From Phallusia mammillata (lineage: Eukaryota): DNA of 64,000 bases. Made by a program: the position numbers and the translations under genes. Shown here one piece after another: positions 397-6,300 of the stretch (positions are counted from its first letter, which is position 1; each line of letters starts with the position of its first letter). Where the stretch lies: contig OZ281495.1 in assembly GCA_965637545.1 (NCBI GenBank), forward strand, positions 12,524,001 to 12,588,000, given 5' to 3'. A model generated the notes under the pieces. The model saw only the letters and a program-made list of their open reading frames with translations, was not told the origin of the DNA and did no database searches.

Positions 397-3300
397 CAAC
401 ACCTATGCAAGAGTGAAGAGCTACTCGGACAAGATCTGGAAATTTCAGCGTTATCTCACTATCGTTGAGTTCGAGCTTCGTCCGGTGCTTCCCCCTCCCC
501 TTATACTTCTCAGTTACGTTGTCATGATCCTGCAGCGTCTTTGCAAAAAACGCAAGAACGTTACTTCAGATCGAGGGCTCAGTAAGTACTATAGGCCCAG
601 ATCAATGGTTCTTAACCGTTTTTATTAACGTTTTCCCTGAGAACGACTCCAGTAACTGATTTTTTGAGTCTGATTGGATACAACTGTCCAATGTCCATGT
701 ATCGTATTTCAGAACTATTTCTGGATGAAGATGACGTTGAAAAGTTACATGACTTCGAAGAAGAATGTGTAGACGAATTTTTCCGTGGTAACAATATCTC
801 AACGTTGGGTGAAAGCATTCACAATGACAAACAGAAGTCAGACGAAAAGTAAGTCTTTGTTGTTGTTTTTGTCATTTTATCTCGATAAGCACCAACATAT
901 TTTTGTACCATGGTTAGTTTTCATAGAAACAAAAAAACGATGTCAAAACTTTTAACATGCTGCGTTGGATTAAAATTAATCACTGTACCCATTAACATAA
1001 TGGTCGATATTTAGGATATAATAAGTGTTAAAAGGAGAATATGTTTTTCAACACCCTAAGTTGCCAGCAGTGATTTTTTAACTTGGTTCGACAGGCGTCC
1101 TCAAAATTATAAACATTCAAACGTTGTTGGTTTAGAAAGTGAAATAGGGGATAGGCCAATGGTTATAAATTTACGTTTACAAAACTTACATTTATATGGA
1201 GACTTTATGGCTGATACAAACACCTTCATTTTACAATCTATTTCAGTTCCGCAAAATTTAGACTATTCAACTTTCCAATCTTGTACAGGGAAAGCGGAAT
1301 TTCGTTTAAATGATGGCATTTTTTTCTACAGACTGTTGCCCCTCGAGAGATTACTTGATACGATGGAAGATATGTGTGAGCGGGAAATACTTCTTACCAA
1401 TCAAATCGACGATCTTAACGAAAGACTTGCTCACCTGGAAGACATTAATATCAAGGTAGACGATTTAAATCCCTCCAGTACGAGTTTTTTAGTCGACTCA
1501 TACTGTTTTGTCCGTATTTTTTTTCTGTCTAAATCTGGTTTGTTCCAACCATTTGGTCACAGAAGAGTATTCAAATTTGCAAACGTGTTAGTTGGTTATC
1601 CGAATTTGATCCTCTAAAAGTCTAAAAGATTGATCTCAGGTCCCTAAAACATGACACAGAATCAAGTATCCCATCGTTCGTTATCGCACATTGCTTTTTT
1701 TGCTGCTTAGTGCTGGATCAAAAATTGCTGAACATCGTATGCACAATGATATGCATAAATTTCAAGGCGTTTCAGTACTGAATGGCAAATGCATAAAGAC
1801 GTCTATAGCAAATAATGTAACAACGGGCGTGCACAAAATTGGAATTATTTTTGTTTTGGTTTAAATAACAAAGCGATAGTGCTTCGATTTCATAATCAGT
1901 CAACAAAAACTGTTGTGTAATCAGTGATCGTCGACATAAAATGCATTTACTATTGTATGGAAAGATCCTGTATAAATGTAAAAGCATATGAGCCAATAAA
2001 TGATAAGCTGCAGACAGTGCACACTGTTTCGACCTATAAGGTCTCATCAGTGCAGCTGGTGACGAGAGATCGGCCGCATTGGCTAGTGTAGCCATCAAAC
2101 GGCACCCCAGTTTGTGGTGAGCAACAGGGTACAACCCCATACATCACCCAGTCTGTGCGATGCCACAACTGGGCATACAGCACAAATGAAACTGGCTCAC
2201 AGTGGCCAAGCAACTATCATATCCTGTATAAAATATGATATTTTTAGTTGTTGGGTCGCCACATCAGCGGATCATCGGCTAATCTCCGATCTCGTCAAAA
2301 CACAGGAAGGACAGAATCTTTATCCGAAACCGACCGCTATCTTCCAGCTCCGTCAGAACTAGGTAACAAAAATGTTGCATTATTTCATAATTCAGTATTA
2401 TCCATTTTGCCTTGTCAACTATTGATAGGAAATTTTATAAATATTAGCAATTTAAACAATTTCAATTCTTGGCCCTAAGGCCCGATCCACACTGGTTAAT
2501 TGCTCGCACGCACGATCGCTCGCTTGGCTTGGAATTGCGTCGGCGTTGACCACATTGTCTACTTCATGCTTGGTTGACTGCTAACATTTTGTCAAGACTA
2601 AATGATATGAAATCCCGCATAAGATTATTAAACATAACGTTTCCTGAATAATATTTGCTTTATTACTCATTTCTATATATTTGCTGATCTGTGATTACTA
2701 GCTGGCACAACGTAACGAGTTTAAACATTATCTGGTATTTATGTAACATCGTTTGGGATACACAAAATATATCAAAGAACATATATATGCAGTTTTACTA
2801 ACATAAACACCATGTGGCTCAACCCCTGCATAGCAAATTCGTTCACTTTTGCCTGCACGCGCTGCCCGAACAATGGATTTTCAATTCGGCTGCGAGCGAC
2901 GCACGCAGCGTGAGATCAAGCTCGCGCCGCCTGCGGACAAAACATTAATAAACAAAGATCGTGCGAGCAGTGTGGATGGGGCCTAAGAGATGATTATGTA
3001 GCCCAGCTTTTTTCAGTTATGTTTTAGTCTAAATGCCCGTTTAAAGCAGTATTAAATATATTTCATTTCAAAAAATATTGTTAATCAACTTATTCAATAC
3101 ATTCTTGTTGTGAATTAAACAATTTCGTTACTTAGGACCTCTACCTGAAACAAGCGCAGCACGAGCTTGGATGTCATTACGTCATCGCTCAAGAATACGT
3201 CAAGACTCGGAAATGAGTTCAGCGAGCGACTGGCATCCCATCAACTTCGGCAACTCCAGGTTCGTAAGTCTTTCGTAGGTGAACATAAGACTGTATGAAA

Positions 3301-6300
3301 GACGGCATTTTCCACCAGAGTATGTAAACTGGTTTCTAAAAACCGTGCTTATACAGAAATCGTCCTGAACCAATCGGCCCTCATTATTGATGATACCAGT
3401 TGTGGATAATGTATACTAAACTAAAGCTTTCAGTATCCTTAAATTAATCTGTGTTTTTTTTTGTCAGAATCAGATTTAAGTGTATACTGAAAATTTCAGT
3501 TTAGTATAAACCAGCGGTTCTGAAACTGGGGTCCGCGAGGCAATTTGGGGGGACCCCGAAAAGGTTGAAGTACTTCTACAATCTTATTTGGAGTCGGTTT
3601 GTGCCACTGAATCAGTTCAAATCAAAGTAGAATTGAGAATCGACTGTCCATCCATTGCAAAACAATAGCATTTATTGCATGATAACTAACAAAAAAATTG
3701 TTCGCGCACAATCGTAATGTTTTTGTCTTGTCTGTGATGTCACAACCAGTTTTTGGATCGTTGTTATGCGCATTTTTTCATAACTAGGTAAAATCCTGCA
3801 ATCAACTTTCGTTTTTCTGAAATACACATTCAGGCTGCCGCGAGCCCTCGAAAAATGGCAAAGGGACCGTTTTGAAAAAAATATGAAAAAGTTTGAGAAC
3901 CACTGGTATAAACGCTTTTTTTATTTGAATTGGGATAAGGACATAACGGTTATTTTTTACGTGGTTTAGAACACGGAGCTGCGACAAAAGCAAGACGTCA
4001 ATTTTACCGGAATTGGAAAAACCTTTGCGAAGAACCAATTCCACAGGTCAGTTATGTTGCGCAGTTTTTTAAAACGTTTACAAAGTCGTGTGAAATGTTT
4101 GATTGTTGCAACAGAACATAAGTTTTTGTCCCGCCCTGAAAGATTTTCAACATTTTACTTTCGTACAAATCAGAATTCTTGTTTTTTCTAGTGGTTGGTG
4201 AAGTTTTTATTTTATTGCCATTGTCGATCCATTTTTATTTAATATAAAGAAAAATTGAATCATAACACTAAAACTTTGGACAATATCGCATGTAATGTCA
4301 CTAGTGCTACAAAAATGTTTGTGCCATCTTTAACAGAAACGTTTAAATAACTAAGTATGATTATTGGCAACCACATATGGGACTTTGAATTAAATTTGTA
4401 TCCAATTTTTTTAAACAAAAACACCTTGCTAAAGCCCAGATATTAACGAAATATTCTGTAGGCGTGTTGGCCGACAATAAATCAGACAATCTGCTGCAAG
4501 TTCCAAGCGATCGGTCCAAGTTTGGTTTCACCACACAAATGTCAATGCCCGATGACGAACTGAAGTCTCTCTCGTGTCAGGATATTATGCTGGCAAGCTC
4601 TGAACACAGGTTGAAGTTTATGCCTGCTTCTGGCACTGACAGAGATGGAAACGATCAGGCTGCTCCAATTGGCCAAAGGTAAGTTGTTTTGTTTAGTGTT
4701 AACCACCACCCCTTAAAATCGCTTCACTTGTCGAAATCGTAATCGGTCGACCGACGTCATTTACTTGTGACGTTGCGCATGGGCTTGTGCCAAACTGGTG
4801 ACCGATCAAAAAATGGATGTTTTGAAACGAATCGTGTGTTGTTAATGTAAACCAGTCGCACTGCAAAACACATTTTCGAATGTATATGCTGAACAAGACA
4901 CAAAAGACTTATTAGTTGTGTAGAGACAACATATGTTAGACATTAAGTTCAAAGAATAAAAAGTTTGGTTTTAGAGATTTCTCAATAAAAATCGACCGAC
5001 TTTATAGTTTCATACAGTTAAACATACTGCTTAAATACTTGACATAAGTGGTTTCAATAAACTCTTGTTTTTTAACTACGTTGTTGTTGTCAAAAATTGC
5101 ATGCTTTTACCCTTAAACATTGTTTCACACTAGGAGCGGGTCGTCACTACACCGTCACGTCGCCATCGACGAAGACGTGACTCAGCAGAGATATGATGAC
5201 GCAGCAAGTCAGTGTAGCGGCGTTTGGTTGTCAGATCCAGCTCCAAAGGACACGCCACCCCCACAAAGGACTACACGGCGATCGAACGAAATCACACCCC
5301 CAAGAAGTAGTTTATCGTGTTTTGAACTCAGTCCCGTGTCTGAAGGTGCAGGGAAATCTCACTTTGAAAACAAGACCATTGCGACCGAATTGCCGCTGTT
5401 GAACGGACTAACAGACGTCGCGACAAGCTCGGTGTCGAAGAATAACCGCCCAAAGCTATCACTTACTTCTAATGCAAGCTTTGGTACGTATATTTCAAGC
5501 GACAATGCTGAAAGGTGCCAAAACTGTTTCACCCCTTTGCAGGAATTGATGGTAAAGTTAAGTTTGTTTGACATGCTGAAAATTTACCCCAAAATTTATT
5601 TAACATTCTTATTTTCCAAATAACCCAATTTTACTTATGTTTATTTACCCCTATGCATGTCAAAGGAGTAGACTTATTCCTGGTTGGAAAAATCTTGGAT
5701 TTTCTATTGGTTGTGGCGTAACAGACATATGTAGTTTATTCTTATCTTCAAAAACTAAAATGTTTTAACACACCAAGTAAAGACTTAAAAAATAACTTAA
5801 TTAAAAAGCTGCCAGAGAGCTGGTACATAAAAAGTACATAATACTGGCATTTTAACAAATAGCTGTCGTTAGAAAAAAAACGTCTGCCTTTACTGAATAC
5901 AAGTTTTAATGTCATGATTTTATAATCTTTTCTTTTTATTAAATCTTGTTTTATAAATCTTAACGTTATATTTACAAAACAGCAACTGCCTAAAACAATG
6001 CCACCCGGCGCAACTTATATGTTGATAACAACTGAAAGAAACTATGCGTAAAGCCCAATATTTTTCCTTCAGACAAATCGTCCAGCATGAAGAAGCGATA
6101 CAATGCAACACCGACTCTCAGCATACGACCTTCCCCCGGCTTGCCCAGGCCCCACTATAAAAGCATCACAGACACAATTGACACTTCAAGGTGGCATGAA
6201 ATCTACGCACCTCTAGCCCCACAAACCCCATTTGACTGCTGGTGGAAGGTAAAAGCTAGATTCAAATACTGGGTCTTAGATTTGAATGGAAAATCAAATC

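Follow-up and report, generated by a model that had tools for sequence, protein, structure and literature searches.

A hammerhead retrozyme family in the ascidian Phallusia mammillata, probably mobilised by Penelope-like elements

Small mobile elements that carry a hammerhead ribozyme have been described in animals as non-LTR (long terminal repeat) retrozymes (Cervera and de la Pena 2020, PMC7229834), and their dependence on the enzymes of Penelope-like elements (PLEs) has already been proposed, with existing support coming from co-occurrence (PMC7229834) and, in frogs, from sequence likeness (preprint 10.64898/2026.07.22.740005). Here we analyse a candidate family of this kind in the ascidian Phallusia mammillata, starting from a 244-bp insertion in a 64,000-nt stretch of contig OZ281495.1 (assembly GCA_965637545.1, positions 12,524,001 to 12,588,000, hereafter the window, whose numbering is used unless another sequence is named). 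The insertion is very probably a 5'-truncated, single-arm copy of a 282-nt non-coding and non-autonomous animal non-LTR retrozyme, mobilised by a PLE enzyme, and the original prediction made from the window, namely a dispersed and mobile retrozyme family with a type I hammerhead, is supported.

The family resembles the described animal elements (PMC7229834) in most respects: a canonical type I hammerhead in a small non-coding unit (170-400 nt), head-to-tail repeats, target-site duplications longer than 4 bp, the lack of an LTR, primer-binding site and polypurine tract, strong self-pairing as a circle, presence in RNA and coexistence with PLEs. It differs in a G+C content of 50.7%, where 'below 50%' has been reported, a descriptive rather than mechanistic trait. 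Circular RNA and cleavage are documented for the class (PMC7229834) and are predicted for this family. It is a further example of an already described class; a literature search found no paper describing retrozymes in tunicates, and one ascidian genome paper merely counts nine Rfam hammerhead hits.

Schistosome Sm-alpha, described as resembling short interspersed nuclear elements (SINEs), and newt satellite 2, which forms long arrays, have no sequence relationship to the unit. They are similar to it in being short, present in high copy number and equipped with a type I hammerhead with an internal loop in helix I (see PMC7229834). Plant LTR retrozymes are also non-autonomous, hammerhead-bearing and thought to spread via circular RNA, but they have type III hammerheads placed in LTRs, a primer-binding site, a polypurine tract, 4-bp duplications and Gypsy helpers (PMC4918200).

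The second relevant group are the PLEs themselves, whose insertions form partial tandems truncated at the 5' end, in many cases next to an inverted 5'-truncated copy, and bear a 'tail' of 30-40 bp at just one end (Craig et al. 2021, PMC8557442), a tail signature that has been called common and exclusive to PLEs (Frangieh et al. 2024, PMC11167929). In vitro, a purified anole PLE enzyme cuts both strands of the target, extends them and favours AT-rich DNA. Its reverse transcription begins at two positions inside the RNA, which delimit the tail, and the use of these start sites does not differ between strands (PMC11167929). The insertions analysed here share with PLEs the 5' truncation, the partial tandems, the adjacent inverted 5'-truncated copy, the tail at one end, AT-rich targets, the apparent use of two internal start sites with priming on both strands, and a hammerhead located upstream of these sites. 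Unlike PLEs, the unit has no open reading frame and its hammerhead is canonical, with a 5-bp helix III, the PLE form being minimal and dimeric; the distance from its cleavage site to its start sites is 10 and 37 nt, versus about 81 and 120 nt in PLE-A, a PLE of this genome described below.

The window copy and its hammerhead motif

The inserted DNA (1977-2220, minus strand) lies between two exact copies of the 12-bp sequence ATCCTGTATAAA (left copy 1965-1976, right copy 2221-2232), which occurs exactly twice in the window (expected 0). Assembled contigs from two other sequenced samples, X16 and X18, compared with window 800-3400, reveal the empty site. A 1495-nt X16 contig covers 800-1964 and then 2221-2483 with zero differing letters, its joint skipping 256 bases, i.e., the insertion and one copy of the duplication, with 12 letters that fit either side and a single remaining ATCCTGTATAAA; an X18 contig has the same 1964/2221 joint. 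The repeat that had been noted as bounding the segment is therefore a true target-site duplication, and the insertion is recent and polymorphic among sequenced samples.

With the unit numbered along the strand of the ribozyme, so that s1 is the base directly following cleavage (window 2012) and s282 is C17 of the hammerhead (window 2013), matches to other genome copies show that the retrozyme-derived part (1977-2215, minus strand) reads s80-s282 followed by s1-s36. It thus comprises 239 of the 282 nt of the unit, being 5'-truncated and lacking the 43-nt stretch s37-s79, and at least six other genome copies are 100% identical to it over 239 bp. The five bases ATCAT at the 5' junction (2216-2220) are filler outside the unit, as multimers read GCTTGGG at this place; they belong to the insertion, since they lie within the 256 bp missing from the empty allele. 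At the opposite end, positions 1977-2003 on the minus strand (about s10-s36) correspond to the 'tail' between the two alternative 3' termini that emerge from the 3'-end clusters of the family, the window copy ending at the distal one. The original prediction had called the segment a retrotransposed monomer: a dispersed copy of retrotransposed type it is, but a sub-monomeric one. Its further expectation of a copy made from circular or multimeric RNA agrees with the observation that the copy spans the cleavage site, which implies a template that was uncleaved, multimeric or religated. At the 5' junction, ATCATAT (2216-2222), made up of the filler and the first bases of the right duplication, is reverse-complementary to ATATGAT (2233-2239), and this pair may be either a small inverted duplication or a chance occurrence in AT-rich DNA.

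The minus strand of 2006-2057 contains a complete type I hammerhead motif, with helices I, II and III and the catalytic core, as seen by direct reading of the sequence, in the Rfam alignment and in the minimum free energy (MFE) fold. The core consists of CUGAUGA, GAAA and the cleavage triplet GUC with C17 at 2013, and the conserved positions are all present (C3 U4 G5 A6 N7 G8 A9, G12 A13 A14, the A15.1-U16.1 pair and H17). Helix I has 7 bp (5' strand AGCUGCA, 3' strand UGCAGCU from 2012), helix II has 4 bp (GACC/GGUC, loop UUAUA) and is closed by G10.1-C11.1, and helix III has 5 bp (ACAGU/ACUGU, loop GUGC); the assignment to type I follows from helices II and III being capped and helix I open. 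Beyond an internal loop, helix I can be extended by 6 bp between GCCGAU (2074-2069) and AUUGGC (1997-1992), both on the minus strand, and the MFE fold of 1985-2080 reproduces the three-way junction including this extension. Sequence reading and Rfam alignment agree on predicted self-cleavage between 2013 and 2012. On re-reading, the core, the perfect helices, the continuation of helix I and the cleavage position are all as originally proposed.

Some conservation of the ribozyme within the family is suggested, and only suggested, by its lower variation compared with the rest of the unit (0.5% vs 0.8% in one sample, 1.4% vs 3.2% in the other) and by a 71-78% diverged relative of the unit that keeps an identical hammerhead core. 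A covariation test had no power, as the family is 93-100% uniform and the diverged relatives have the identical core. From the motif, together with the literature on comparable elements (PMC7229834), we infer self-cleavage and circular RNA.

The repeat family and the anatomy of its insertions

A search of the 240-Mb genome with the window segment gave 2365 first-look candidates, with 94-100% identity in the 89 matches listed. The 27-nt ribozyme core (at most 2 mismatches) has 1143 genome matches, 562 forward and 581 reverse, distributed over all large contigs, and its reversed control has 0, which puts the motif far beyond chance and is in line with the dispersed family that had been predicted; no exact match of this 27-mer was found in metagenome or viral collections. 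Longer copies are head-to-tail multimers with a period of 282 and no coding sequence between units, from which the true unit of 282 bp was derived as the 239 bp of the window copy plus the 43-bp stretch. A distal 27-mer (s42-68) has only 158 genome matches against the 1143 of the core, indicating strong 5' truncation, with most copies being short 3' pieces that include the ribozyme.

The non-coding nature claimed for the segment holds for the whole unit, in which no conserved open reading frame was found across the family arms. When the reference unit (at locus L011) is read as an endless circle, a 94-codon stop-free antisense frame without AUG appears, but it is private to that unit, since 68 of 70 other arms carry TAG at one codon of it. 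The element has no tRNA or other Rfam match. Folded as a circle, the unit reaches -99 kcal/mol with 70% of its bases paired (z -2.5).

The family is also found in RNA. Element contigs are present in runs X1 and X15, identified as RNA runs by their spliced contigs with GT..AG joints, and the intron adjoining the window copy has no depth there. An X15 contig that runs across the unit junction includes the 43 nt absent from the window copy, and RNA of full-length units therefore exists.

To characterise the insertions, 70 loci were mapped onto a natural unit: the 30 that match the window copy best, and 40 with an exact core hit on contigs 1 and 2, chosen by map order. Removal of duplicated loci left 59 unique insertions. 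Their 5' ends are scattered over the unit; their 3' ends form two clusters, s9-13 (..CUGCAGCUUA) and s36-38 (..GCUUUUACA), which places them about 10 and about 37 nt downstream of cleavage and 27 nt apart. Flanking duplications of at least 10 bp accompany 38 of the 59 insertions, mostly 12-14 bp long with a mode of 12-13, whereas in mismatched flank pairs the longest shared word is 4-6 and reaches 10 or more in 1 of 300 pairs. The duplications are 78.6% A+T, compared with 64% in the window. None of the 59 insertions is part of a longer coding element, in contrast with the embedding in an autonomous element that would have made the segment a mere fragment, and no PLE open frame forms part of any of them, so the family is non-autonomous.

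More than half of the insertions (31/59) consist of two inverted arms whose 3' ends always point outward, never tail to tail, and which usually overlap by 1-2 nt at their join. Of these 31 insertions, 26 pair an arm ending at s1-20 with an arm ending at s30-50; two ends of one class occur in none (0/31), and the remaining five have their odd end inside the palindromic helix III of the ribozyme. Such a one-of-each pattern would have a probability of about 5e-9 under independent choice. Single arms use both end classes (15 and 9). All sampled arms cross the cleavage site, and the longest measures 689 nt, or 2.4 units; among the 19 arms of at least 282 nt, three begin at s282, s1 or s2, versus 0.2 expected (a post hoc test).

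Three further patterns were considered and set aside. An apparent hot spot of 5' ends at s27-45 is an artefact, since the first 30 loci had been picked as those matching the window copy best. The idea that an inverted 'anti-ribozyme' arm is built into the element was ruled out by arm lengths and junctions that differ at every locus. A test for rolling-circle descent from private variants, in which units differ at 0-7 sites and share 0-2 private variants, gave a result that is compatible with it but too weak.

Diverged and duplicated relatives were also observed. A non-coding repeat of at least 1.6 kb (L055:1212-2857 and L011:1768-3228, copies 96% alike) starts with the 71-78% diverged 282-nt unit, its core letter-perfect, and continues into 1.3 kb of unrelated sequence. 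At L011, a young retrozyme multimer adjoins the far end of this repeat with no duplication, a junction that could be a chimeric insertion produced by template switching. Loci L034, L035 and L036 (contig 1, at 4.27, 4.43 and 4.45 Mb) represent one older two-armed insertion present three times with the same 14-bp duplication and the same flanks, which points to a segmental duplication later than the insertion; two of the three have a PLE-A copy about 700 bp from the retrozyme.

Penelope-like elements and the mode of mobilisation

PLEs, potentially active autonomous ones among them, are abundant in this genome. A GIY-YIG-bearing open frame used as query gave 985 candidates and 133 matches, among which are PLE open frames of about 800-845 amino acids, copies almost identical to each other and a tandem array of 2.6 kb. 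The PLE-A family (L073:1016-1270, minus strand; also L072, L074, L075 and L077) has a C-terminal GIY-YIG domain, and the best database relatives of its open frame are Phallusia mammillata UniRef entries at 81-83% identity. About 81 nt before its 3' end it carries a minimal type I hammerhead, CUGAAGA...GAAACGUC, also read as CUGAAGA..GGACGAAACGUC, with a helix III of only ACGU. Three PLE-A copies end at ..TTAAAT and two have a further 39-nt tail. A second large PLE group, with frames of about 800 amino acids that are 37-39% identical to PLE-A, includes 2.6-kb head-to-tail arrays (contig 2:24,755,260-24,761,305) and inverted pairs. Just downstream of a decayed PLE copy, at L076:2326-3098, four tRNA genes lie on both strands.

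In the mechanism that we propose, genomic copies would be transcribed, the type I hammerhead on the sense strand (minus in the window) would cut multimeric RNA into 282-nt units, and a host ligase may circularise them. A PLE reverse transcriptase with its GIY-YIG endonuclease would nick an AT-rich target on both strands, 12-14 bp apart, and cDNA synthesis would start on the retrozyme RNA at an internal site about 10 or about 37 nt downstream of the cleavage site and run back through the ribozyme for a variable distance. Extension of both nicks would yield two cDNAs joined head to head, and hence inverted arms of which one bears the 27-nt 'tail'. At the window locus a single arm would have started at the distal site (1977) and stopped at s80, with five filler bases added at the join. 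The helper, which we infer to be a PLE enzyme, is assigned as a class and not as an individual PLE.

A more specific version is possible though doubtful: a PLE enzyme acting as a dimer may prime the two strands of the target in a single coordinated step, with each half of the dimer using one of the two sites that lie 27 nt from each other on a multimeric or circular retrozyme RNA. It is suggested by the rule of one end of each class per two-armed insertion, by arms that cross the cleavage site and by long arms that start there. This rule goes beyond the in vitro PLE result, where the two strands do not differ.

Alternative explanations differ in what they make of the insertion scars. Copying of a SINE-like element by the enzyme of a long interspersed nuclear element (LINE) through target-primed reverse transcription, with the hammerhead as a passenger, would account for 5' truncation and 12-14 bp duplications, which are also seen in LINE-driven insertions, and the inverted arms recall the 'twin priming' of L1. 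However, twin priming splits one RNA, whereas both arms here cover the same part of the template; the sampled insertions have no poly(A), A-rich or simple-repeat 3' end, the element has no tRNA-like or other Rfam match, and the pair of fixed internal 3' termini, separated by 27 nt and each used once in a two-armed insertion, is the signature considered unique to PLEs by Frangieh et al. (PMC11167929), which together make this explanation very unlikely. Spread as satellite DNA at the DNA level, by unequal exchange or reintegration of extrachromosomal circles with no RNA step, would fit the constant period of the tandem units, and newts do have hammerhead satellites (cited in PMC7229834); it is extremely improbable in view of hundreds of dispersed short copies whose 5' ends vary while their 3' ends are fixed and whose duplications measure 12-14 bp, of the precise empty site and of the shortness of the arrays. 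That the segment is instead a solo fragment (pseudo-LTR) of an autonomous PLE, and no separate non-autonomous family, could be argued from the abundance of PLEs with hammerheads in their pseudo-LTRs, from Xenopus retrozymes that resemble pseudo-LTRs (10.64898/2026.07.22.740005) and from the second PLE group, which lies outside the two 3' regions compared, those of PLE-A and of the L076 element. These two regions, however, have minimal hammerheads of unrelated sequence, the unit recurs head to tail at intervals of 282 bp without intervening coding sequence, the PLE open frames listed for contigs 1 and 2 have no exact core copy in their vicinity, and none of the sampled insertions has a PLE open frame in cis within 1.5 kb, the sole nearby one being a separate element about 700 bp away at a duplicated locus. 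We therefore regard a PLE fragment as distinctly unlikely.

A different kind of objection accepts the mobility as described and holds the hammerhead to be dispensable, maybe an inactive relic carried along because it adjoins the binding and start sites of the enzyme. The anole PLE, the only PLE tested, inserted in vitro without need for ribozyme cleavage, as its ribozyme mutants still inserted and no reads ended at the cleavage site (PMC11167929), and in all arms here copying ran through a cleavage site that was intact. The Rfam model Hammerhead_1 (RF00163) aligns with the motif from end to end, as type I, but scores 22.8 bits (E 0.0035 on 401 bases), below the gathering threshold of 34 bits, mainly because helix III is longer than in the model and its 8-nt insertion is penalised; a scan of the whole window with Rfam gave no match at any gathering score. 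On the other hand, the core is complete and canonical with long helices, the ribozyme is less variable than the rest of the unit and its core is unchanged in the diverged relative, the starts of long arms coincide with the cleavage site more frequently than expected, and comparable invertebrate retrozyme hammerheads cleave efficiently (PMC7229834). On balance a relic is unlikely, and we retain a retrozyme with a probably functional ribozyme, mobilised by a PLE enzyme, as the preferred reading.

Besides the in vitro behaviour of the anole PLE and the low Rfam score, several observations weigh against this retrozyme reading. The family is too uniform for covariation, so that ribozyme function rests on the completeness of the motif; the fold energy of 1985-2080 is ordinary (z -0.95), and in the circular MFE fold of the unit helix I of the ribozyme does not form. 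A search of the whole genome with RF00163 gave no match, a result that is uninformative because controls were equally blank. Copies are mostly sub-monomeric, 5'-truncated and dispersed, unlike those of described animal retrozymes, with multimers of about 4 units at most among the matches listed, not the tens of units reported for the class or the long arrays described in corals. The tail of 27 nt is shorter than the published 30-40 nt and the 39 nt of PLE-A, and the 282-nt unit has no similarity (including by blastn) to the 3' regions of PLE-A and the L076 element. Some RNA contigs continue from the element into genomic flanks, and part of the RNA signal is therefore read-through of inserted copies; all runs consist of assembled contigs, which are mute on RNA ends at the cleavage site, strand, level and circles.

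The host gene and the significance of the family

The insertion sits in an intron (1456-2247) of a plus-strand host gene, to which it is antisense. Spliced contigs of X1 and X15, with joints 848>1332, 1455>2248 and 2362>3136, define the upstream exon (1332-1455, plus strand) and the downstream exon (2248-2362, plus strand) of a gene traced over 848-3259, with a further exon ending at 848 and another starting at 3136. When three exons were translated singly, the open frame of exon 1332-1455 was found to resemble a coiled coil. From the end of the right duplication copy it is 13 bases to the AG (2246-2247) and 15 to the downstream exon. Positions 2453-3061 and 3323-3400 have a depth of 8-90x the single-copy level in DNA runs, indicating that the next intron contains other repeats.

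For annotation, these results place one retrozyme insertion 15 bases upstream of the exon boundary at a 3' splice site (2248), and explain the many 'opposed hammerhead pairs' of this genome as insertion scars. Such scars are a different kind of evidence for mobilisation by PLEs from the co-occurrence and sequence likeness invoked so far, and they match the in vitro behaviour of a purified PLE enzyme. As the window copy is absent from other individuals, the family is active now or was so very recently, and its host is an ascidian used in developmental biology, which makes a mobilisation assay practical. If coordinated priming by a dimeric PLE enzyme were true, this young polymorphic family would be a direct in vivo read-out of the mechanism and would provide a workable ascidian system for testing how retrozymes are mobilised.

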